A DNA stretch of 16,069 nt, from positions 527,277-543,345 of the forward strand of contig NW_008806279.1 in assembly GCF_000400465.1 (NCBI RefSeq). Reading direction: 5' to 3'. This document shows positions 1,432 through 15,880 of the stretch, in pieces. A model generated the notes under the pieces. It was given only the letters and a program-made list of their open reading frames with translations, had not been told where the DNA came from and made no database searches. Source of the DNA: Wallemia ichthyophaga EXF-994. Lineage: Eukaryota > Fungi > Basidiomycota. A program made the position numbers and the translations under genes. Numbering within the stretch: the stretch's first letter is position 1; each line of letters starts with the position of its first letter.

Positions 1432-3203
1432 ATGATCAAATCATCATTTAAAGACATAGAAATACCAAAGACAAGCATCTTTGACTTTATTTTACCGGAA
1501 CATCAGCAATCCAATGACAAGACTGTTTTCATTGACTCAACCAACGATAATTCTCTTACAATTTCTCAGCTTCGTAAATACTCCTTACAGCTAGCGTATG
1601 GGCTTAGAAAATACCACAACATTGGTAAAAGTGACAAAGTACTCATCTACAGTCCAAACTCGATCGCCTACCCCATTCTCCTTCTCGGCACGTCGGCTGC
1701 AGGAGCTTGCGTATCGCCGGCAAATCATGCATACAATGAATTCGAGTTATCCCACCAGATCGAGGATAGCGAGGCGTCGTTCATCTTCGCGCATCCAGAC
1801 AACATGGACCTTGCAATCAAAACTTTGAAAGAGATCGGCTGGCCAGAGAGCAAAATAAATGAGAGGGTGGTGTCAGCGACTGAGGAAAGCTTTGGTAACC
1901 ACGTCCCATACACTCAACTGCTATGTGATGACATTCAGCGCGGTATACCTGAAAAATTCGATGGAGATTCAGCTCACGATGTTGCTTTAATATGTTACAG
2001 TAGCGGTACAACTGGTGCAAGCAAAGGGGTAATGACAACACACCGGAACTTCGTGGCGAATCTGTGTCAATCAGACAACACGCGCGCCTTCGCGCTTCAA
2101 GTAAATGACGTAACGCTGACGTTCTTACCCTTTTGCCATATTTTTGGAATTCTAGGCCTTCTCTACACTTTAGGCAAGCAGAATGTAACTCAGGTACTTT
2201 TACCCCGCTTTTCTCTTGACGCATTTGGCGCTGTGATTGAAAAATATGGCATTACTGCTACATGGGCCGTCCCGCCAATTCTCAATTCAATCTTGAAAAC
2301 TGACATTGAAAAGAAATTCGACTTTAGCTCACTAAGGGTAGTGCACGTCGGCGCTACTCCACTAGGAGCTGATCTCACAAACAGCTTCAGTGACAAGTTA
2401 GAGGGCGTGGTCGCGGTTTCAAATGGATATGGCAAGTCGGGATAGTGACTGTCAAACACCTTTTAGCTGACTCACAAAAAGGTCTCACGGAAACGAGCCC
2501 TTTGGTATGCAAATTACCTTTAGAATATACCAAAACCCACCCATCGTATATTGGAAAGTTGGTTTGTAACACTACAGCGCGTCTTGTCGACGAGAATGGC
2601 CAGGATGTTCCAGGCGACAACAAATCGAGTGGAGAGTGAGTATCAGCTTGCTCATGAGTGCCCTCTAACACTCTCAGACTCTGGGTTAAAGGTCCGCAAG
2701 TCATGAAAGGCTATCTCAACAGACCAGATGCCACAGCCGAGAGTATGACGTCAGATGGATTCTTCAAGACTGGCGATATAGCAATATATGATAGCAAAAC
2801 ACGCCTATTCAAGGTGGTAGATAGAATGAAGGTAGGAGGTGGACTTTTGTTGTTTCAAGTCTTGCTGACGCCCTCACAGGAACTTATCAAGTACAAAGGG
2901 TTCCAAGTTACACCAGCACCTCTTGAAGCATTGATCATGTCGAATACTGAAGTAATGGATGCGGCTGTGATTGGTGTGTATGACGATAAGCAGGCAACGG
3001 AACTGCCTAGAGCCTATGTCGTGCCTCAGCACGCGTCTAACTTCAACAATGCAGCTTGGTGTGCGGAGATAGGAGCTTGGGTAGCCGATACGGTTGCAAA
3101 TCATTCAAAGCTGCGTGGTGGTGTGTGCACAATCGATGTCATCCCCAAAACGGCTTCAGGAAAGATTCTTAGAAAGAACTTACGTACTTTGGCAGCACAA
3201 TAA
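1432..3203 (+). CDS. 4-coumarate-CoA-ligase-like acyl/aryl-CoA ligase (ANL superfamily), copy 1, 543 aa, no PTS1. Exons 1432-2431, 2482-2635, 2678-2831, 2880-3203
   Basis: Motifs YSSGTTGASKGV, LPFCHIFG, GYG|LTETSP, GELWVKGPQVMKGYLNRP, GFFKTGD, DRMK|ELIKYKGFQV and PKTASGKILRK. Introns 2432-2481 (GC-AG), 2636-2677 and 2832-2879 restore one frame of 1632 nt. Ends LRTLAAQ-stop. Confidence 0.93.
1447..1604 (+). repeat. Near-identical tract A shared by the two ligase genes (partner 3588-3745)
   Basis: 158 nt with 2 mismatches (1566, 1569) by manual alignment. Confidence 0.9.
2583..3080 (+). repeat. Near-identical tract B shared by the two ligase genes (partner 4725-5222), spanning introns 2 and 3
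   Basis: 498 nt with 5 mismatches by manual alignment. The 42-nt intron 2 is 100% identical. Confidence 0.9.
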
Positions 3204-3572
3204 TATAAACCTTATTCTAACCGTTAATCGGTGTGCTTGTGATAACAATTACGATCTCATGAAATATTGTAATTATGCAAATGGCATAGAATGTTTAACA
3301 TCAGAGTCTTTATAAGGAATCCCAGCAGCACAAACTAAACTTCCGGGCCGTTTAACCTATTAATTAATAGCCATTCACCTTGAAATTTTCCTTGTTTCAG
3401 TTGTTGAATACCAAGGAAACAGGTCATTGGGGCGGCAATGTTTATATGCGTTCATAATCCATTATAAAGCATACATTTTGATCGCCTGATTATGCCAGAT
3501 GATAATTGCAGCTGACATCAACAACCGGTTATCTTTCTGAAACAACCGGGCGCATCTTGAACCACTCCCACA

Positions 3573-5369
3573 ATGATTGTATCGCCTTTTAAAGACATAG
3601 AAATACCAAAGACAAGCATCTTTGACTTTATTTTACCGGAACATCAGCAATCCAATGACAAGACTGTTTTCATTGACTCAACCAACGATAATTCTCTTAC
3701 AATTTCCCAACTTCGTAAATACTCCTTACAGCTAGCGTATGGGCTGCGAAAACACCAAAACGTAGGCAAGGGCGATAGAGTACTCATCCTTACACCAAAC
3801 TCGCTCGTCTATCCTATCCTCTTCATGGGCACACAAGCTGCGGGAGCATGTGTGTCACTTGCCAACCCTGCATACAACTACTTGGAACTATCCCACCAGA
3901 TCAAAGATAGCGAGGTCTCGTTCATTTTCGCACATCCAGACAACATCGATCTGACCAACAAGATACTGAAGGAGATAGGGTGGTCAGAAAGCAAGATACG
4001 TGAGAGGGTAGTATCAGCGACCGAGAAAAGCTTCAGGAACCACGTATCATACGCTCATCTCCTCTGTCAGGAAAGGCAAAGGGGCATACCTGAAAATTTT
4101 GACGGCGAAAGTGCACACGATGTCGCTATCACTTGCTATAGCAGCGGAACGACAGGTGTAAGCAAGGGTGTTATGACAACGCATTATAACATGGTTTCGA
4201 ATATTTGCCAGTCAAACAACACTCACTCTTCAGCTTCACAACTCACAGATGTCGTCCTTTCTTTTCTGCCCTTATACCACATTTTTGGACTAGGAAGCAC
4301 TCTATACACCCTTTCACAGCAACAAGTACCACAAGTGCTGCTTTTCCGCTACTCTCTTGACGAATTTGCTGCTGCAATTGAAAAATATCGTGTCACAGTA
4401 TCGGCAGTAATACCTCCGATTCTCAACAATATTCTCAAAAGCGATATTGAAAAAAAGTATGATCTTAGTTCACTGAGACAATTGGGTATCGGCGCAACTC
4501 CATTGGGAGAAGATCTCGTACACAGCGTCAGTGAAAAGCTGGGAGGTGTCGTAGTGATCACGAATGGATACGGCAAGTTATGAAGGTGGCTTTCCAGACA
4601 CTTTATAGCTGACACACCAAAAGGTCTCACGGAAACGAGCCCTTTGGAATGCAAATTACCTTTAGAGTATACCAAAACCCACCCCTCGTACGTCGGAAGG
4701 TTGGTGTGCAACACTACAGCGCGCCTTGTCGACGAGAATGGCCAGGATGTTCCAGGCGACAACAAATCGAGTGGAGAGTGAGTATCAGCTTGCTCATGAG
4801 TGCCCTCTAACACTCTCAGACTCTGGGTTAAAGGTCCGCAAGTCATGAAAGGTTATCTCAACAGACCAGATGCCACAGCCGAGAGTATGACGTCAGATGG
4901 ATTCTTCAAGACTGGCGATATAGCAATATATGATAGCAAAACACGCCTATTCAAGGTGGTAGATAGAATGAAGGTAGGAGATGGTCTTTTGTTGTTTCAA
5001 GTTTTGCTGACGCCCTCACAGGAACTTATCAAGTACAAAGGGTTCCAAGTTACACCAGCACCTCTTGAAGCATTGATCATGTCGAATACTGAAGTAATGG
5101 ATGCGGCTGTGATTGGTGTGTATGACGATAAGCAGGCAACGGAACTGCCTAGAGCCTATGTCGTGCCTCAGCACGCGTCTAACTTCAACAATGAAGCTTG
5201 GTGTGCGGAGATAGGAGCTTGGATAGCAGGAAAAGTCGCCAATCATTCAAAGCTGCGTGGTGGTGTGCGCACAATTGATTCTATTCCCAAAACACCGGCT
5301 GGCAAAATACTAAGGAGACATTTACGTACTATGGCAGCACAGGAAAATGGTGCGCTTGCTAAACTTTAA
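3573..5369 (+). CDS. 4-coumarate-CoA-ligase-like acyl/aryl-CoA ligase, copy 2, 551 aa, C-terminal PTS1 (-AKL), predicted peroxisomal. Exons 3573-4572, 4624-4777, 4820-4973, 5022-5369
   Basis: Same motifs and intron positions as copy 1 (introns 4573-4623 GC-AG, 4778-4819, 4974-5021); 1656-nt frame. Ends ENGALAKL-stop, and AKL fits the canonical [SAC][KRH][LM] PTS1. Confidence 0.93.
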
Positions 5370-5455: not shown

Positions 5456-8400
5456 CTAATTTGATGGCCGATGTAGACGGAGTAAAAGGCTGGAAATTAC
5501 GACACTCACGCTTGAAAGCGCCATCGCTAATGCGGAATATACCGGTGGCAGCTTCACTCCCAGCGGGTAAAAGACACCGGCAGCAACAGGAACAAGAGTG
5601 ACGTTGAAAACAATCGCCCATATGAAATTGATGATGATGCGTGTCTTGACTAACTTCGATAGCTTGAATATTTTGATGAGCGAGCGTAGTGATGAGTTGA
5701 GAAGAATGAAGTGTGCAGAAGATATGGTAATCTGACTACCAGAACCCTGCGACGTGCCCACATCAGCTGCTATAATTGCCCCACTATCATTGAGTCCATC
5801 ACCGACAAACATAACAAGCGGGGTTACTTCCCTTTTGTCTGGCTTTCCAATCCACCTCTTCATGCGCGAGAGCATTGTAGGCGAAAGCGGCTTACAATTA
5901 GCTTCATTCCTTAATTTCTCGATATACTTCACTTTATCATCAGGCATTGCACCCGCCATCACATTCTCCTCAGCGATACCGACATCCCTAGCTATAGCCC
6001 TCGCCGTTAATTCCTCATCACCCGTCAGCATGAAAATTTGCTTGCCTGCATTGTGTAGTTGCTGTACTACCTCTCTCGACTCTTCCCTAGGCGAGTCAGC
6101 GATAGCTAGTGCATATGTGATCGTCAAAGCTTCATCATCTGCACCAGCCTCTTTTAGCGCCACAAACACAATACTATTACCGTTATTTCTCCAACGGTCG
6201 ACTGTCGATGAAGGTTGGCTGCCAGCACCGACAAACTTGCCACTCCCAATGCGCATCTCCAGCATTTTATCGTCGCAACTGAACACACCCTTAACTCCAC
6301 GACCACTAACCTCTTCATACGAGGATAAGTCAGGTAACAGTGAGTGGGATTTCGCGGAGGCATGGCTCTTTACTGCCTTGGCTATGGGATGCGAAGACTG
6401 CTCTTCCATAGATGAAACCATACCCCAAAGTACGTCTTCATCGAGCAAACCATCCTCCTTCTTAGAGAGACGTTCTTCCGAAACAATCGAGATCTTGCCT
6501 TCTGTGAGCGTTCCGGTCTTGTCGAGCACCACGATCTGGACCTTGTTGGCGAGCTCGAAAGATTCGCTACCAGACTGAACAAGAACACCATGATTGGCGA
6601 GTACACCCGATCCCACTGCAATGGCTGTAGGTGTAGCTAGACCAATGCCGCAAGGACAAGCGACGACTAACGTAGCAACGCTGAACTGTATCGCAAAAAA
6701 TATCTTGCCACCTTGATCCATCTTGCCGCCGAGCTCTGCTGCATTTGCAGCAACGACGAGCCACACTATGAGCGTGATAATTGAGAGTAAAACTATCACA
6801 GGAACAAACACCGCAGTCACTGCATCTGCAATCTTCTCTATTGGAGCTTTTTTGGATTGAGCATCGTTCACTACCCGTATGATCCTGTCAATCAACGTCT
6901 CCGACGAGGTGCTCGTCACCTTCATAAACACCGCCTTCAGGCAGGTAGTTCCAGTCATTACCTCATCACCCTCGTGGAGAGTGACCGGAAGACTCTCGCC
7001 TGTGACGCTGCTCATGTCGAACGGGTAGTTACCCCGGCTGCTAATAAGACCGTCGATAGGCACAACTTCGCCCGCCTGCACTAGCAGCGTATCGCCGATC
7101 TCGATAAGTGTGAGCGAAGTCTCCTTTATACTACCTCTGCTGCTGCGTGCCGGAACATTATTACCATTAGGAAGTAACCGCGTTGTTTCGCTGCTTGAGC
7201 TATTCTCGTGGTCATAATCACTGTCTGTTTTGGTCTTTGCTTCAGAGAAGGACAGGTCGTTGTCCCCGACAAGCAGCGCTTTGCTTGGTTTCAGCTTGCC
7301 GAGTGCACTTATAGCATCACCTGTCTAGAATTCTGTAAGATGACAAATATTGCTTAAATCCTCCCCACCTTCGCTTTCATGTAGCTCTCTAGAGTCCTCC
7401 CGATCGAGATAAAAAATATCAAGAAGATGGGCATTTCAAAGTATCCCATCATTCTATCGTCGGGTGTCTTTAAGTGGATATCGATAATAAGCATCGCGAT
7501 ACTCGCAAAGTATGCTACTGTCGTACCGAGAGAGACGAGCAAATCCATACTACCCCACGTGACTAACGCTATCCATGGAAACCTATCACTCTTGCTGACA
7601 GCTTTGTAAGAAGCCTTGAGAGAAAGATACGACTTTTTGTGGAAATTCCAACCCACGATGAGGTAAACAGGAGAGGAAAGAAGAAACATCACTACAATAC
7701 CAACCGTTGCCTGTCCCCAGATGGGTCTTTCAAGCTCACGTCTGACAGGGTGATCTTCGTTGAGTAATTCCATTCCAATAACATTGATTACCAACGCTGC
7801 GAAACTGAACACAGCGGATACTGCCACTCTGACCAGCCATGCCTTTGATTCCGCTAAGTGAATTGCGGTGGAACGCGAAGAATTCGCCGAATTGTTTTCT
7901 ACCGCTGTTATAGTGAATTTCGGATGGGCGTGATGAATATCCCTAATGATACTACGCACAGTGAGTAAAGGAGAATTGGGAGTGTACGTGACTGTTACGA
8001 AAGGATGATCGAGCGTAATGTCATTTGTGTGCGCAATTAGAGGCAGGGAGTTCAGTGTGTCTAGCAGGTGTGAAGGACAATGACCGCAAAACATTCCATC
8101 TACTTTAAACTCCACGTTGCGTTCGTTGCTCCTAGCCTCATTTCGGCTCACAGTTGATACAGCAGTAGCACCATAACCGATATCTTCAATAGTATCGACA
8201 AGGTGGGCGACATCAACGGCTTTGTTATGTTCAACGATAGCAGTAGCACTAGTAAGCGATACGTCTACGGTGAGGACACCTTCTTCTAGTTTTAAGGCGG
8301 AACTGATAGTTTGCGAGCAGCTTGCGCATGTCATACCTTTAAACTCAAACTTTGTTATGACAGTGTCTTGGTCTTCTTCCTTCTTTAGAGGTGATGATTC

Positions 8401-8978
8401 GATAATTTTGCTTTCGTAGCCAATTGTATCGATCTCATTCTGCACGGATTCCAGGGAGAGTTGCTCGTGGATGAATTCTGCTTCTGCAGACATCAAGCTA
8501 ACTCGAACGCTGTCTGGATCAACACCAGTCATTCCTCGCAGGGTTGAAGAGAGTGTTTGTGTGCAACTAGCACAAGTCATGCCCTCCACTGAGAGCTTTG
8601 TAAAGTAGAATAATTTACCAGTCTTTGTTGCGTTTTCGCCCTTCTCTCTGCACTCCTGGCAGCTTTCGAGGTGGCGGGTATTGAGCGTTTCATGAGATTT
8701 TCCTTTGTCTTTTGACCTCAAGAATGAATTCTCCTGATCGACCGAATAACCAATTTCGTGCAGAGCCCCAACGACTTCTCGCTTCGCAGCATTTTTATCA
8801 TCACATTCGAAAGAAACAGATTTATTGAGAAGGTTTACTGAGACGTTTTTGGCTGCTGAATTTTTGAGTGCGCTCTGAATAGCATAGACGCAGCTAGGGC
8901 AGTGGATGGTTGGCACTGAGTAGGTATGAGTGGGTCTGTAGAGAAAGCTGCTGATAGCGCACCTATCATGCTTTCCAT
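5456..8978 (-). CDS. P1B-type heavy-metal (copper-type) transporting ATPase, 1143 aa. Exons 8978-8963, 8915-7369, 7324-5456
   Basis: N-terminal CxxC HMA motifs (IHCPSC, GMTCASC x2, GMFCGHC), YFE..GRTLE, TGES, CPC (6650-6658), DKTGT (6509-6523), SSHP, TGD, GDGLND and MALSS (5510-5524). Introns 8962-8916 (GTGCGC..CAG) and 7368-7325 (GTGGGG..TAG) join ESYMKAK|TGDAISAL in frame. The first mini-exon (MESMI) is inferred because the frame upstream of 8916 has no ATG. Confidence 0.93.
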
Positions 8979-9419: not shown

Positions 9420-10043
9420 TATCTACCTGAACAAATCGTCCAATGTATTGTTCCGCGCTTTCCCAAAGATAAGATTAGGAGTATCTCGCGCACGCCAAAT
9501 GTGGAAATAAGATTGTAAAGCACCGATATAATGCGACGTTATCACCAAGTTCCTGTCAAAGCACTTACAAATCACCTGTATCTTGTTACCAAACAGCCAA
9601 ACCATGTTGAACGTGTGAATTATAAGTCGAGTGACTCACAATAAGCTAGGTACCATTGCACAGGAATATAAGGGGTCCGTATTCAAACAAAGCAGACCTC
9701 CCCAAACAAAGACAAAGTTATAAAATACTGAAGGCAACTTATGACTCTTGTGAAATACCTTTTGTGAAATTGAGTGATAGTGCTTGAGTGTTTTAGAGGA
9801 TGCTGGACTTGGTAAGAGTTCCCCTTTAATTTCGGGGTCGCTGAGAAAAAGGTGTTGTACCTGTTTTATCCTTTGAAAGACGAATTCATACACAACGGAG
9901 GAACAAAATACGTTCAAAGTGATCTAGTCTACTTCACACACTTTGCATCCACGAATATACACAACTACAAACGCACAGATGCCGAAATGATTATCGGAGA
10001 TGAGGTGCCGAACTGCAAAATGAGATCATCTGGTCCTGGGTAA
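9420..10043 (+). other. Possible cryptic multi-exon gene or pseudogene with an F-box-like N-terminal pattern
   Basis: After a pyrimidine tract and CAG at 9419 the frame reads YLPEQIVQCIVPRFPKDKIRSISRT. A good candidate intron at 9812-9851 (GTAAGA..GCTGAG..AAAAAG) precedes a 63-codon open frame ending TAA 10043. No start codon and no unique exon chain could be fixed. Confidence 0.3.
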
Positions 10044-10216: not shown

Positions 10217-11838
10217 TCACTCCAGAGATTTTCCAGCTTCACGAGCAGCATGAGGATCCGGCGATCTGCGTATTTCAACCTCCTCGATTATTTTGTTGAT
10301 CAGAGCAAGTAAAACTCCGGCTGCCGAAAGTCCTACTCCGAGATAGCAAGCACCTCTGATACCAGCTTCTGGATCTTTACCGCCGTTATTCACATGGTTT
10401 TCAACCGTCGCGGCGATACCCAACGCGATCGCGATGGAATAGTTGACGAGTGTGTTGATAAGCGATCCAGCCAGTCCTTGATGTTCACGCGGCAGGTGAT
10501 CGGAGATGATAACCGAAGCAGCTGGGAAGCTCATATCCACACCGAGTGTAGCAATAATATAGCTCACAAAATGCATCGCCCAGTAGGTGAGCTTCACAGG
10601 CTCGAAAGCCACTAGACATATTGCGATCAAGAACGAAAACATGGCACCGATGGTCACCCAGCTGCCGCCGAATTTGATGATTAAGATAGGTGAAATCGCT
10701 GCTCCTAACCAACCCACTACGCAAAATGGCACTATCTGAGAGACTGTCTCAAGCGCATCAACACCTCGTAGGTCTTGGATGTATCTGATAGAGAAGAGCA
10801 GCCAGATGCCAAAGGTGGACCATCCCGTCGCAACGCATCCGAGCATAAGGTTGTTGTGTACGTTCTTGAAAATTGTCAGTGGTAGTAGCGGCTGCGCTAC
10901 TCGAGTCTCAACCCAAGCAAATACACCGAGTAAGATTACGCCAACTGCGAGTAGAGCACAGACGTAACCATTCTTCCATGTCACAATGGCTGCCTGATTC
11001 CAGGCGAAGTTAAGCAGAATTAAGCCGGGCACTGCCGTGAGAGCGCCCCAGTAGTCGAATCCTATTCCCTTCTGGTCGCTTCTGTCTCCATCTGGAGGGA
11101 TAATCCAGACCGCTAGACCGAACATGACAAGAAGGGCGATAGAAAGCACAAATGTCGACCACACCCATTCAGCTCCGCTAACTGGTGCTTTGACCGAGCT
11201 TTGAGCGAAAAGACTGCTGAACAAAGCACCAACCACGAATCCATTGGGGGCAGATGCAGCGAACAAGGCAAATGATATAGCCTTTTTTATGCCTGGCGGG
11301 AATGTCCGGCCTATTATTGCTACAGCGTTGGGAAGCATTAAGGCAGGTGCTATACCCTGCAGCGCTCTGCACACGTCGAAGAATATAATCGAGCGCGTGT
11401 ACACTGTTAAGCCAGTCACCATCGACCAGAGGCTGTACCATGCGAATCCAATGCACATGATCCGCTTATTTCCATATATATCACCCAATCTCCCACTGGG
11501 CAATACGAAGGTACCAACTGACAAGGAGAAAGCGGCTACTATCCTAAATCTAATTAAGCCAAGTCAATCACGTAAGTCTCTTGCGCCCACCATGATTGCT
11601 GTCCCGGCGACCCTTGCACGCCAAAAGTTTCCGCTATGAACTCTTTGGTGATTACCAAATACGCCCCAAGTCCCACCTGAGTGAACAACATACAACTAAC
11701 GCATATCACTATTGCCGCCCAGTCCTTGACAAAGTTGAGTGTACTGGATGATCGTTTAGCCGAAGGTTTTGATGAAGCAGCACTGTTAGACTTCTCCGTT
11801 GGTTCTTGCACTTGGTCGTCTTCTAAAGCCTCTCTCAT
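10217..11838 (-). CDS. MFS drug:H+ antiporter, DHA2 (14-TMS) family, ATR1/aminotriazole-resistance-like, 524 aa. Exons 11838-11591, 11543-10217
   Basis: Intron 11590-11544 (GTGGGC..TAG) gives PGQQSW|IVAAFSLSVGTFVLPSGRLGDIYGNKR (MFS motif A). Also RALQGIAPALMLPNA, APNGFVVGALFS, many hydrophobic segments and HQGLAGSLINTLVNYSIAIALG. ATG at 11838 has AATAAT context; the ORF-track start at 11850 is TTG. Confidence 0.92.
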
Positions 11839-12612: not shown

Positions 12613-15600
12613 ATGAATTGCTTTGAAGCAGCTGTATGTGATATCGCATTCCATGATCGCTAACTGACTGTCATCCACTCGCTACAGCACAACACAAGAT
12701 GGACGGTACCATCTCTGGTGCGGTATCACCTCGATCAAAACACAAATCACACATTTTTTGAGGATGCCTGTGGTCAGAAATTCAACGGCAAAGACACTCA
12801 TCAAGCTGTTTACAGAGCCGCTGCTTACATCCAGCATCAACTTAATCACAACAATGACCAGGCAGTCGGGCTCTACTTGGAAAATGAGATATTAAGCTAT
12901 TCTTCGATAGCGAAAGGTGTCAATGTGTCGGGTAATAGATTCATTGCACTTTCCAACAGGAATTCAGTGGCGGCGTTGGCCTATCTTATCAAAAAGTCAG
13001 AGACTCACCACTTAGTATACGGCAATACATCTTTACAGCTCACCAAAAACGCCAAAGCAGTCAAAAATGAACTAGCCAAGGATGGCTACGCGCTTAATCT
13101 AATCGAAACACCTTCATTAGATATGCTGTTGCCAAAGTCGGGTGAGTTCAACGTCAACTTAGACCCACTTCCTCCACATTTCGAGGAAGACTCGAATGTA
13201 GTAATCATGCTCCACTCTTCGGGTTCTTCAGGTGACTTTCCAAAGCCTATCAAGCTTACAAACGAGTCTATTCGGGGCTGGATCCTTGCACAAAATCCTA
13301 CGGCCGACAACAATGTGATGGATTTATGGGGAAAGAAGCTTTACGCAGGTGCATTGCCAACGTTCCATGCGATGGGTATCTTGTTTCATGTTATAGGATC
13401 GCTATCCACGCCTTACATCAATACCATTCCCAAAATTGACATTCCACCTCCATTTCCTACTCCTCAAGGTATCCTCGATGGTGCCAGGCAAACGGAAAGC
13501 CACATCGTAGTCGCCGTTCCAGCCTTCATTGAAGAATGGGCCAAAGATCCGGAAAGTGTCGAATTTCTCAAGAAGTTAGATTTAGTGATGTTTGGTGGTG
13601 CTCCATTAGGTGAAATTGGGGCTACTTTAGCAAAAGAAGGTGTGCCACTACTTTCGAACTACGGCAACACAGAGTGCGGAGCTTCCAGCTCCATCTTCGA
13701 AATTAGGCCTCGAAGCAATGTGGACGACTGGGCTTTTGCGGTGCTCTCGTCGAATCACCACTACAGGCTGGCTGATCAGGGTGATGGTCTATTTGAACTC
13801 CAGTTCCTCCAAACCGATAAACACGTACCATCTGTTAATAACCTGGATGATGTCAAAGGATATGCCACTGGTGATCTTGTGGAGAGACACCCAACGAAAC
13901 CTAATTTGGTTAAGATTGTTGGCAGATCAGACAGCCAAATTATCCTGGCATCTGGTGAAAAGACAAATCCCGAGCCAATCGAGCGCATTATCAATGCAAA
14001 TCCTCTGATCTCAGGATCGGTGATGTTTGGAAGACAAAGAAGTGTTAACGGTATACTTATACAGCCTAATGATACCGTGGACAACGCTGAAAGCTTCATT
14101 GATGGCATTTGGCCGTCCGTCGAATCTGCAAATCAGCATGCACCACAACATTCCCGCTTGCAAAAGTCCTTGATTGTTGTTGTTGATTTAAGCAGGCCAC
14201 TTCCTGTTACTCCAAAAGGCAGTAGTGAGATTGCTATTCTGAGTGTCCGAGACACCCCACTGACACTCACCAGTCAAGCGTAAACCCGCGATCGAGCTCT
14301 ACAGGAAGGAGATCGACAGAGCTTACGACAGCGCGAATGATGTTGGCGTTGGTTTAGTTGCATTTGATAGTGCGAATGTCTTGGCATCTGTCTCAGCGAT
14401 TGTCAAGTCAGTGATCGGCAATACTGTCGAAGATGACGTTGACCTTGTCTCGCAAGGCATGGACTCTATGCAGGCGACAATAATCCGCAATAAGCTCGTC
14501 GCATCCCTGAAAGCCTTCAAAAATGTATCTTTAGCTGCAACAATCGCGTTTCAGCACCCGAAAATCACTCTTCTTTCCGATTTTGTTGGGCAGCTGCTAA
14601 ATGACGACAGCAAACATCTGTCAGAGGAGGAAATAATTGCTGCGAAGGCTGCCGAGATCGATGCAACGATTGCTTTGCACACGCGCGATCTTAAAAGCAA
14701 AAGCGCACAGGGATGGTCAAAGCCATCAGGCGAGGGTAGGAATGTGGTTGTTACTGGTACCACTGGCGGACTGGGTACCGAACTTCTCGTTACTCTCATC
14801 CATGACCCTAGCGTCAAACGCGTCTACGCTCTCAACCGCGCAAATCCTCGAAAGCGTAAGAGTATTAAAGAGCGTCAAGTGGACAGTCTAGCTAGGAAGG
14901 GCATTCCAGCTGCTGGAATTGTTGAATCACAGAAGCTGTCGCTCATCGAAGCCGACTTAGCAAAGCCAGATCTTGGATTGAGTACGACCATTTACTTGGA
15001 AATTAGTGCCAAAGTGGACGTGATCATTCATAACGCCTGGAGAGTCGATTTTAACGTCGCCTTGCAGTCATTTGAGCAGGACATTTCCGGTGTGGTCAAT
15101 CTTACCAACCTCGCGATCACATCAAGTCGAGGTGCTGCAGTCATCTTCACGTCATCAATCGGAAGTCTTGCGCGCTGGCCAGTCGGCAAAAAGACATTCG
15201 AGGAGCCGATCTCAGACCCCGCAATTGCAGTTGGAATGGGATATGGTGAGAGCAAGTTTGTTGGTGAGCGTATCTTGGCCACCGCCTCACAGAAGACGGG
15301 ACTACCAACGACTGTCCTTCGAATTGGACAGCTTTGCGGTGATAGAAAGTCTGGTTTCTGGAGTTCTTCGAATTGGGTACCAGCGATTATCAAGTCTAGT
15401 CTCGCCCTCAAATGTCTTCCAAATGGAAATGATTTAGTCGCGTGGATCCCGCTAGACAATGCTGCGCAAGCCATTGTAAACTTTTCGCACAACAGAAGAA
15501 GTCTAGGCAAAACACATGATCTTTTACACATCGTGCACCCACGCCCACCGAGCTGGAGCGCGGTCTTTAACGTGGTGGCTGAATATTTGAACAAGAGAGG

Positions 15601-15880
15601 CGCTGGCGTCACACTAGTGAGCTATAGTGACTGGCTGGAAAGGCTGCAAGCCGAGGATACCTCTAACATGTCCGACAACCCTGCTATCAAGCTGCTTCCG
15701 ATGTTCGAGTCCAGTGATATTGCTGCTCATCGTCGAGAGTTTGTTGAGGCTATGGGAAATCCGCTTCTGCTGACAGAGAGATCGCAGAAAGCGTCTGAGT
15801 CGCTTAGAAACTGTACCGAACTCAACCAAAGAGATGTTGAGAAGTGGATGAATCACTGGGTCAAGGAGGGACTCTTATAG
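12613..15880 (+). CDS. NRPS-like A-T-R carboxylic acid reductase (adenylation, thiolation and NAD(P)H-dependent terminal reductase domains), 1054 aa. Exons 12613-12633, 12688-14224, 14274-15880
   Basis: A domain: LHSSGSSGDFPKPI, LPTFHAMG, YGNTECG, YATGDL, GRSDSQIILASGEKTNPEPIE, TPKGS|IKRK. T domain: GMDS (Ser codon 14465-14467). R domain: TGTTGGLG, IIHNAWRVDFN, YGESK, LRIGQLCG. Introns 12634-12687 (GTATGT..GCTAAC..CAG) and 14225-14273 (GTGAGA..CTGAC..CAG) give a 3165-nt frame. Confidence 0.93.

Follow-up and report, generated by a model that had tools for sequence, protein, structure and literature searches.

A probable relic of a peroxisomal targeting tail behind the stop codon of a tandem 4-coumarate-CoA ligase-like gene in Wallemia ichthyophaga

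The 16-kb stretch of DNA analysed here (the window) is identical to scaffold KE007229.1 of Wallemia ichthyophaga EXF-994, an obligately halophilic basidiomycete, and carries two tandem paralogs whose deposited annotations (EOR01855, here copy 1, and EOR01856, here copy 2) both read '4-coumarate--CoA ligase-like 7'. One of the two proteins ends in a type 1 peroxisomal targeting signal (PTS1), which directs Pex5-dependent import into peroxisomes, and the other does not. The question raised by this locus is how that difference arose. An earlier note on the sequence had proposed that the nucleotides behind the stop codon of copy 1 are a fossil PTS1-encoding tail, and that the pair has been split between two compartments. 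Our analysis leads to the following history, to which, taken as a whole, we assign a probability of about 0.85: the ancestral gene had a PTS1 tail, copy 1 lost it through a nonsense mutation and was kept by selection, and its enzyme is probably cytosolic beside a peroxisomal copy 2 enzyme.

The tails of the two copies and of their relatives

Copy 1 (1432..3203, exons 1432-2431, 2482-2635, 2678-2831 and 2880-3203; 543 aa) and copy 2 (3573..5369, exons 3573-4572, 4624-4777, 4820-4973 and 5022-5369; 551 aa) both lie on the + strand and have an identical structure of four exons. Their domains and motifs assign both genes to the 4CL-like (4-coumarate-CoA ligase-like) acyl-CoA ligases of the ANL superfamily: precomputed Pfam hits to PF00501 and PF13193 are present in both ligases and in their homologs, and both translations contain the motifs A3 (SSGTTGxxKG), A5 (GYGLTE), A7 (TGD) and A10 (PKTxSGKIxR, with the catalytic Lys). 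In phmmer searches the ligases matched structures of 4CLs, luciferases and Drosophila CG6178, their best structural relatives, with E values of 1e-80 to 1e-67 over residues 3-540.

The rebuilt and the deposited models agree on both protein ends. The copy 1 protein ends in ..LRTLAAQ (coding end GCA GCA CAA TAA), without a PTS1, and the copy 2 protein in ..MAAQENGALAKL, its C-terminal residues being ..AAQENGALAKL. The final tripeptide of copy 2 (-AKL) fits the PTS1 pattern [SAC][KRH][LM] and that of copy 1 (-AAQ) does not. At the nucleotide level, copy 2 ends at 5340-5369 with CAG GAA AAT GGT GCG CTT GCT AAA CTT TAA (QENGALAKL), where the intact PTS1 codons GCT AAA CTT and the stop TAA occupy 5358..5369 (+ strand). 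The corresponding sequence of copy 1 is CAA TAA TAT AAA CCT TAT TCT AAC CGT TAA (Q-stop-YKPYSNR-stop). Its premature TAA, at 3201..3203 (+ strand), stands where four relatives have a Gln codon (CAA or CAG) and copy 2 a Glu codon (GAA), and is followed at 3204..3227 (+ strand) by TAT AAA CCT TAT TCT AAC CGT and an old stop, TAA, at 3225-3227, which would now belong to the 3' untranslated region (UTR).

The register of the comparison was fixed at a 2142-nt offset by the upstream coding alignment. In this register, and without gaps, 15 of 27 positions agree between the copy 1 sequence and the nine final codons of copy 2, whose stop coincides exactly with the second copy 1 TAA; on all of this the reading of the two tails in the earlier note was correct to the base. 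With every 27-mer from either strand of the window taken as a null, the mean number of matches was 7.1, and 0.10-0.12% of the 27-mers reached at least 15 (P ~0.001). The similarity continues past the old stop: the next stretch (3228..3254, + strand) matches the 3' UTR of copy 2, again without a gap, at 13 of 27 positions (P ~0.01), so that 28 of 54 positions match over 3201-3254 (P ~2e-4), and the ungapped similarity fades to background by ~3282. Since the register is kept beyond the old stop, the duplication must have taken the downstream flank along, with no insertion or deletion to disturb the alignment since.

We also compared the stretch with other tails of the family. Two further W. ichthyophaga paralogs end in CAA CAA GAC AAA GCA CCT GCT AAA CTT TAG (P0002, QQDKAPAKL) and CAG CAG CAT ATA GGA CTG GCT AAG CTC TAG (P0003, QQHIGLAKL), the W. 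mellicola ortholog of P0002 in AAA CAA GAC AAA GCT ACA GCT AAA CTC TAA (KQDKATAKL), and a ligase on a contig of Logan assembly SRR25399871, referred to below as L008, in CAG CAG CAT GCT GTA CCA GCT AAA CTC TAA (QQHAVPAKL). All six tails, the copy 1 sequence included, are of equal length. Scored against a position profile of the five PTS1-encoding tails (copy 2, P0002, P0003, the W. mellicola gene and L008), the copy 1 stretch falls in the top 0.06% of the 27-mers of the window. It matches the individual tails at 15 (copy 2), 16 (P0002), 12 (P0003), 16 (W. mellicola) and 11 (L008) of the 27 positions, and the Lys codon (AAA) in the ..QDK.. linker of P0002 and W. mellicola is preserved in it. 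Two other W. ichthyophaga assemblies (strains L002 and L003), which differ from the reference by ~0.7% across the locus, have the stop and the stretch behind it without a single changed base, so that these are not a sequencing error. The chance statistics and the five-tail profile thus agree with the proposal of a fossil signal, and by these sequence comparisons we identify the 27-nt stretch as a true relic of a PTS1-encoding tail.

The former Ala-Lys-Leu codons of the relic (3216-3224, + strand) now read TCT AAC CGT. Each carries one non-synonymous change (GCT to TCT, AAA to AAC and CTT to CGT; three of nine bases), whereas the same codons in the five functional tails differ by synonymous changes only, which indicates that the copy 1 stop is old.

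The direction of the change can be read from the relatives. A survey of the C-termini of 117 full-length homologs of Basidiomycota and Mucoromycota found a PTS1 in 103 by the strict pattern given above and in 112 by a broader one, and AKL is the commonest C-terminus (73/117). A neighbour-joining tree of the N-domain, restricted to the part in which copies 1 and 2 have not been homogenised by gene conversion (see below), unites copies 1 and 2 and L008 in a clade with 97% bootstrap. L008, the closest relative, ends in -PAKL. It adjoins an ortholog of a reductase gene of our window (72% nucleotide identity over 3.3 kb), so that the two loci are partly syntenic, and no second ligase was found on its 38-kb contig, including the 940 nt upstream of the ligase. 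The L008 ligase was assembled in one piece, which speaks against a tandem partner of nearly the same sequence there. Because L008, all Wallemia paralogs and 103/117 homologs end in a PTS1, the comparison identifies the signal as ancestral and as lost by copy 1, in line with the earlier claim that it had been removed from this copy.

The history that we propose would run as follows. The common ancestor of copies 1 and 2 would have ended in a PTS1 (-AKL), like nearly the whole fungal family. A single-base nonsense mutation in copy 1 would then have ended translation eight codons early. At the position of that stop, all four comparators besides copy 2 have CAA or CAG, and GAA is private to copy 2; the earlier note was right about a nonsense change but probably not about GAA as its source, the change being most likely CAA to TAA, a C-to-T transition, with a separate change from CAA to GAA in copy 2 as the most likely and simplest history of the latter. 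The 24 nt of the former tail and old stop would have become 3' UTR and drifted to about the saturated level of silent sites, the register of the relic being kept because no insertion or deletion occurred, and copy 1 would have been retained as a working gene under purifying selection.

Location and upkeep of the shortened enzyme

Since copy 1 has neither a PTS1 nor a PTS2, its enzyme is most likely cytosolic, and that of copy 2 is most likely still peroxisomal; a search with strict and loose PTS2 patterns found none in either copy.

Several points weigh against the history proposed above. Within the clade of copies 1 and 2 and L008, the grouping of copy 2 with L008 received 67% bootstrap and that of copy 1 with copy 2 33%. 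On a sister relationship of the two copies, GAA, or even TAA, as the ancestral state of the mutated codon would be equally parsimonious, a possibility that we do not favour. Only 940 nt of the L008 contig lie upstream of the ligase, and a tandem copy could be present farther out. A search for copy 1 orthologs in other species with the unconverted N-domain returned only L008 and L009, a 2-kb fragment from a metagenome that lacks the C-terminus, but this word-index protein search (four hits) also missed P0002 and P0003, which are ~55% identical, so that absence from it is weak evidence. Both compartments are deduced from targeting signals, and the 3' end of the copy 1 mRNA is assumed from the genome. 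Finally, proteins without a targeting signal can enter peroxisomes by piggy-backing on a signal-bearing partner (PMC3798809).

The last point belongs to the alternative that survives best, namely that copy 1 reaches peroxisomes anyway, by piggy-back import, by low-level read-through of its stop codon or through an alternative 3' exon missing from the annotation. Fungal peroxisomal enzymes offer examples of alternative splicing, of read-through and of piggy-back import (PMC3798809), and the two copies are, through gene conversion, ~96% identical over their C-terminal halves. We nevertheless consider such a rescue unlikely. A read-through product would end in -YKPYSNR, of which the final -SNR is no PTS1, and at the protein level the extension shows no conservation. 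A UAA stop with U as the next base is not known to be one of the leaky contexts, which counts against read-through, as does against piggy-backing the fact that ANL ligases are usually monomeric; the lack of a PTS2 in copy 1 leaves no second signal. As for an alternative 3' exon, we listed all GT and GC donors of 3000-3203 together with the AG acceptors that lie 35-400 nt downstream of each. There was no consensus donor in this interval, and every enumerated splice would delete the conserved catalytic sequence of motif A10. A hidden terminal intron in copy 1, a concern raised in the earlier note, was therefore rejected on sequence grounds, none being apparent.

A second alternative accepts the loss of the signal but holds that copy 1 is dying, the nonsense codon being the first step of pseudogenisation and the constraint that we measure being either a record of the time before the stop or the result of repair by conversion. 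It is true that ~650 nt of copy 1 are overwritten by conversion from copy 2, and the differences within the species in copy 1 (five non-synonymous to six synonymous) are too few to inform. The unconverted part of copy 1, however, speaks for a functional gene. Over the unconverted N-domain (279 codons) the non-synonymous divergence (dN) between the copies was 0.217 and the synonymous divergence (dS) 2.3, a ratio of ~0.09; for the last 37 codons the values were 0.118 and 1.17, so that both copies appear to be under purifying selection with dN/dS of ~0.09-0.10. The relic is heavily decayed (three of nine PTS1 bases changed; 11-16 of 27 positions differing from the functional tails), and neutral drift over the time since the old stop would have brought many stops and frameshifts, none of which is found in the 830 nt of the unconverted part. 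The frame of copy 1 is intact in three assemblies, and the ratio of differences within the species is similar in copy 2 (4:4). Tajima relative-rate tests of copy 1 against copy 2 with four outgroups gave symmetric counts (23:24, 26:21, 26:24 and 25:23), with no acceleration of copy 1. With L008 as reference the counts were 41 and 25 (P=0.049), an asymmetry that more likely reflects a closer relationship of L008 to copy 2 than a difference in rate. The protein itself seems complete: the alignment of copy 1 to the solved structures of 4CL, luciferase and CG6178 reaches residue 540, and motif A10 lies upstream of the new stop, so that the linker and the signal alone are cut off. A gene in decay is thus quite improbable, and on these sequence grounds copy 1 is a gene under purifying selection and not a pseudogene.

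The same data bear on the suggestion in the earlier note that copy 1 was neofunctionalised by a change of substrate, for which we found ordinary divergence only. Rate asymmetry as a sign of neofunctionalisation was rejected, the rates being equal against the four true outgroups, and changes private to one copy at sites invariant in the other Wallemia sequences numbered ten in copy 1 and seven in copy 2. Codon 235 of copy 1 (2134-2136) encodes Cys, the other Wallemia sequences having Tyr and the outgroups Tyr or Phe. Residue 235 directly precedes the conserved A4 His, which lines the acyl pocket in ANL enzymes. Y235C is the sole concrete sign of a change in the substrate pocket and can be taken as a hint only.

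Gene conversion between the copies

Large parts of the two copies have been homogenised, which shapes how their divergence should be read. Conversion tract A of copy 1 (1447..1604, + strand) differs from its partner at 3588-3745 by two mismatches in 158 nt (98.7% identity), and tract B (2583..3080, + strand) from its partner at 4725-5222 by five mismatches in 498 nt (99.0%). In tract B, intron 2 is identical and intron 3 nearly so, and the tract ends ~120 nt before the copy 1 stop. Outside the tracts the copies are far less alike, with ~69% identity to copy 2 in the unconverted N-domain (copy 1 1605-2431) and 77% in the last coding stretch before the copy 1 stop (3090-3200). The unconverted N-domains of the two copies share 68% protein identity, as compared with 67% for the ortholog pair of P0002 in W. 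ichthyophaga and W. mellicola. Divergence at about the level of orthologs indicates that the duplication is old and that the identity of the C-terminal halves is secondary.

Differences between strains exchange bases that distinguish the copies: at 3052, C is replaced by A, which makes copy 1 like copy 2, and at 4648, A by T, which makes copy 2 like copy 1. Such swaps indicate that conversion is still ongoing. Short-read assemblies of the locus are broken by the conversion tracts, contigs from other strains (L001-L003) terminating within them. As a separate observation, the interval 3053-3658, which includes the whole intercopy spacer, shows no difference between the reference and strains L002 and L003 over 606 nt; the remainder of the 1.9-kb contig has 13 differences, and ~4 would be expected in 606 nt. 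Many of the differences outside this interval may stem from conversion and not from point mutation.

Because tract B ends ~120 nt short of the stop, the tails stayed different. It is conceivable, although in our judgement rather doubtful, that selection actively protects the C-terminal difference and so sets the tract boundary, one enzyme being cytosolic and the other peroxisomal. If so, tracts that crossed the tail would restore the PTS1 of copy 1 or strip that of copy 2, and would then be purged.

Two further alternatives concern the tail itself. That the 27 nt are ordinary AT-rich 3' UTR with a chance resemblance to the copy 2 tail is very improbable. The stretch is short, and its figures weaken as it is trimmed, from 12 of 24 matches without the shared stop (P ~0.01) to 10 of 21 for the interior without the stop and first codon (P ~0.025), and linker codons vary even among functional tails; but the register was preset by the coding alignment and left no free parameter, the figures for 27 and 54 nt and for the five-tail profile stand as given above, and the P0002 and W. 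mellicola tails match the relic at least as well as that of copy 2. The opposite direction of change, in which the short end would be ancestral and copy 2 would have gained its PTS1 by a TAA-to-GAA change into a fortuitous -AKL, costs as few changes at that one codon if the copies are sisters, but is scarcely credible when all other members of the Wallemia clade have a PTS1 tail of the same length, most of the 117 homologs end in a PTS1, and the codons GCT AAA CTT are the same in copy 2 and P0002.

Gene models, neighbouring genes and known systems

Intron 1 is of the GC-AG type in both ligases (2432-2481 and 4573-4623; donor GCAAGT). L008, W. mellicola (L006) and the paralog P0002 (L004) have a normal GT donor at the homologous intron. 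GC-AG splicing of this intron restores the universal GYGLTETS motif in both copies. The deposited models EOR01855 and EOR01856 use other intron 1 sites, are 539 and 542 aa long instead of 543 and 551, and drop part of GYGLTETS (A5). Because of this mis-splicing, the rebuilt proteins had no exact match in the protein collection, although a cluster look-up gave the reference accessions; the rebuilt copy 1 protein is the same as reference protein P0134 except for the mis-annotated intron 1. In practical terms, the deposited gene models of both ligases need correction at the GC-AG intron.

The single long first exon of copies 1 and 2 is interrupted in L008, L009 and W. mellicola by two additional introns. 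These flank a 15-nt micro-exon encoding PFYHI of the A4 motif (L008 ~1640-1745; L006 ~9700-9900), with boundaries read by eye from three-frame translations. The A4 segment is PFCHI in copy 1 (2134-2148) and PLYHI in copy 2 (4275-4289). The distribution suggests a loss of introns in the lineage of copies 1 and 2, and probably in P0003 too.

Downstream of the ligases the window contains genes for a copper P-type ATPase (5456-8916, - strand), an MFS transporter (10217-11524, - strand) and a nonribosomal peptide synthetase-like protein of adenylation-thiolation-reductase architecture, of the carboxylic-acid-reductase type (12718-15880, + strand). The last of these is the reductase gene whose ortholog directly adjoins the ligase in L008 (3600-6851, - strand); in W. 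ichthyophaga the copper ATPase and the MFS transporter intervene. A functional link between ligase and reductase is possible. Synteny through the reductase gene yielded no further outgroup tail, the ortholog of W. hederae lying at a contig end (L010), and no 4CL-like ligase was found near the reductase in more distant relatives (L011-L015). The reductase search returned no match in W. mellicola or W. sebi, negatives of a word-index search being weak. The L008 reductase protein is 76% identical in amino acid sequence to that of W. ichthyophaga, as against 67% for that of W. hederae, which we take to be the closest named relative of W. ichthyophaga; a Wallemia lineage that has not been sampled may be the origin of the L008 contig.

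Relatives of these enzymes that bear a PTS1 include the phenylacetyl-CoA ligase of Penicillium and, with -SKL, firefly luciferase. Among fungal 4CL-like ligases, Aspergillus niger HcsA carries -AKL, and A. nidulans FatB is peroxisomal by experiment (PMC8140964). Copies 1 and 2 resemble such ligases (A. niger HcsA, A. nidulans FatA and FatB) in the ANL fold and motifs and, for copy 2, in the C-terminal PTS1; unlike them, copy 1 has no signal, and the Wallemia clade is only ~35-45% identical to the characterised enzymes.

Gene duplication is a recognised route to isoenzymes inside and outside peroxisomes, the first of five strategies listed in a review (PMC3798809), and the relocalisation of duplicates by loss or gain of a targeting signal is likewise established (relevant papers are PMC2817416, PMC3879971 and PMC4202327). 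The Wallemia pair is like the relocalised duplicates of yeast (Mdh, Idp and Cit), in which one paralog has the signal, the other lacks it and both are kept by selection. It differs from them in that the putative causal nonsense codon is visible and the decayed signal and old stop can still be read, and in that the Wallemia genes are in tandem and partly homogenised by ongoing conversion, their locations being predicted. A second comparison is with cryptic PTS1 motifs of fungi that are exposed by stop read-through or alternative splicing, as described by Freitag et al. 2012 according to the review PMC3798809. Copy 1 shares with these an in-frame, PTS1-related extension behind the stop, but in the cryptic cases the extension is conserved, the PTS1 works and the stop is leaky, whereas the copy 1 extension has decayed to -SNR and follows UAA-U. 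We accordingly interpret the copy 1 extension as a fossil and not as a cryptic signal.

The locus is a new and unusually legible example of an established process, and brings no new mechanism. On the history that we propose, the exact event is visible: one nonsense codon would have stripped a duplicated peroxisomal enzyme of its tag, and what is left of the tag can still be read in the 3' UTR, which makes the locus a textbook-style case of relocalised duplicates. With their predicted locations, the two genes offer a natural pair for comparing the roles of a cytosolic and a peroxisomal 4CL-like ligase in an extreme halophile.

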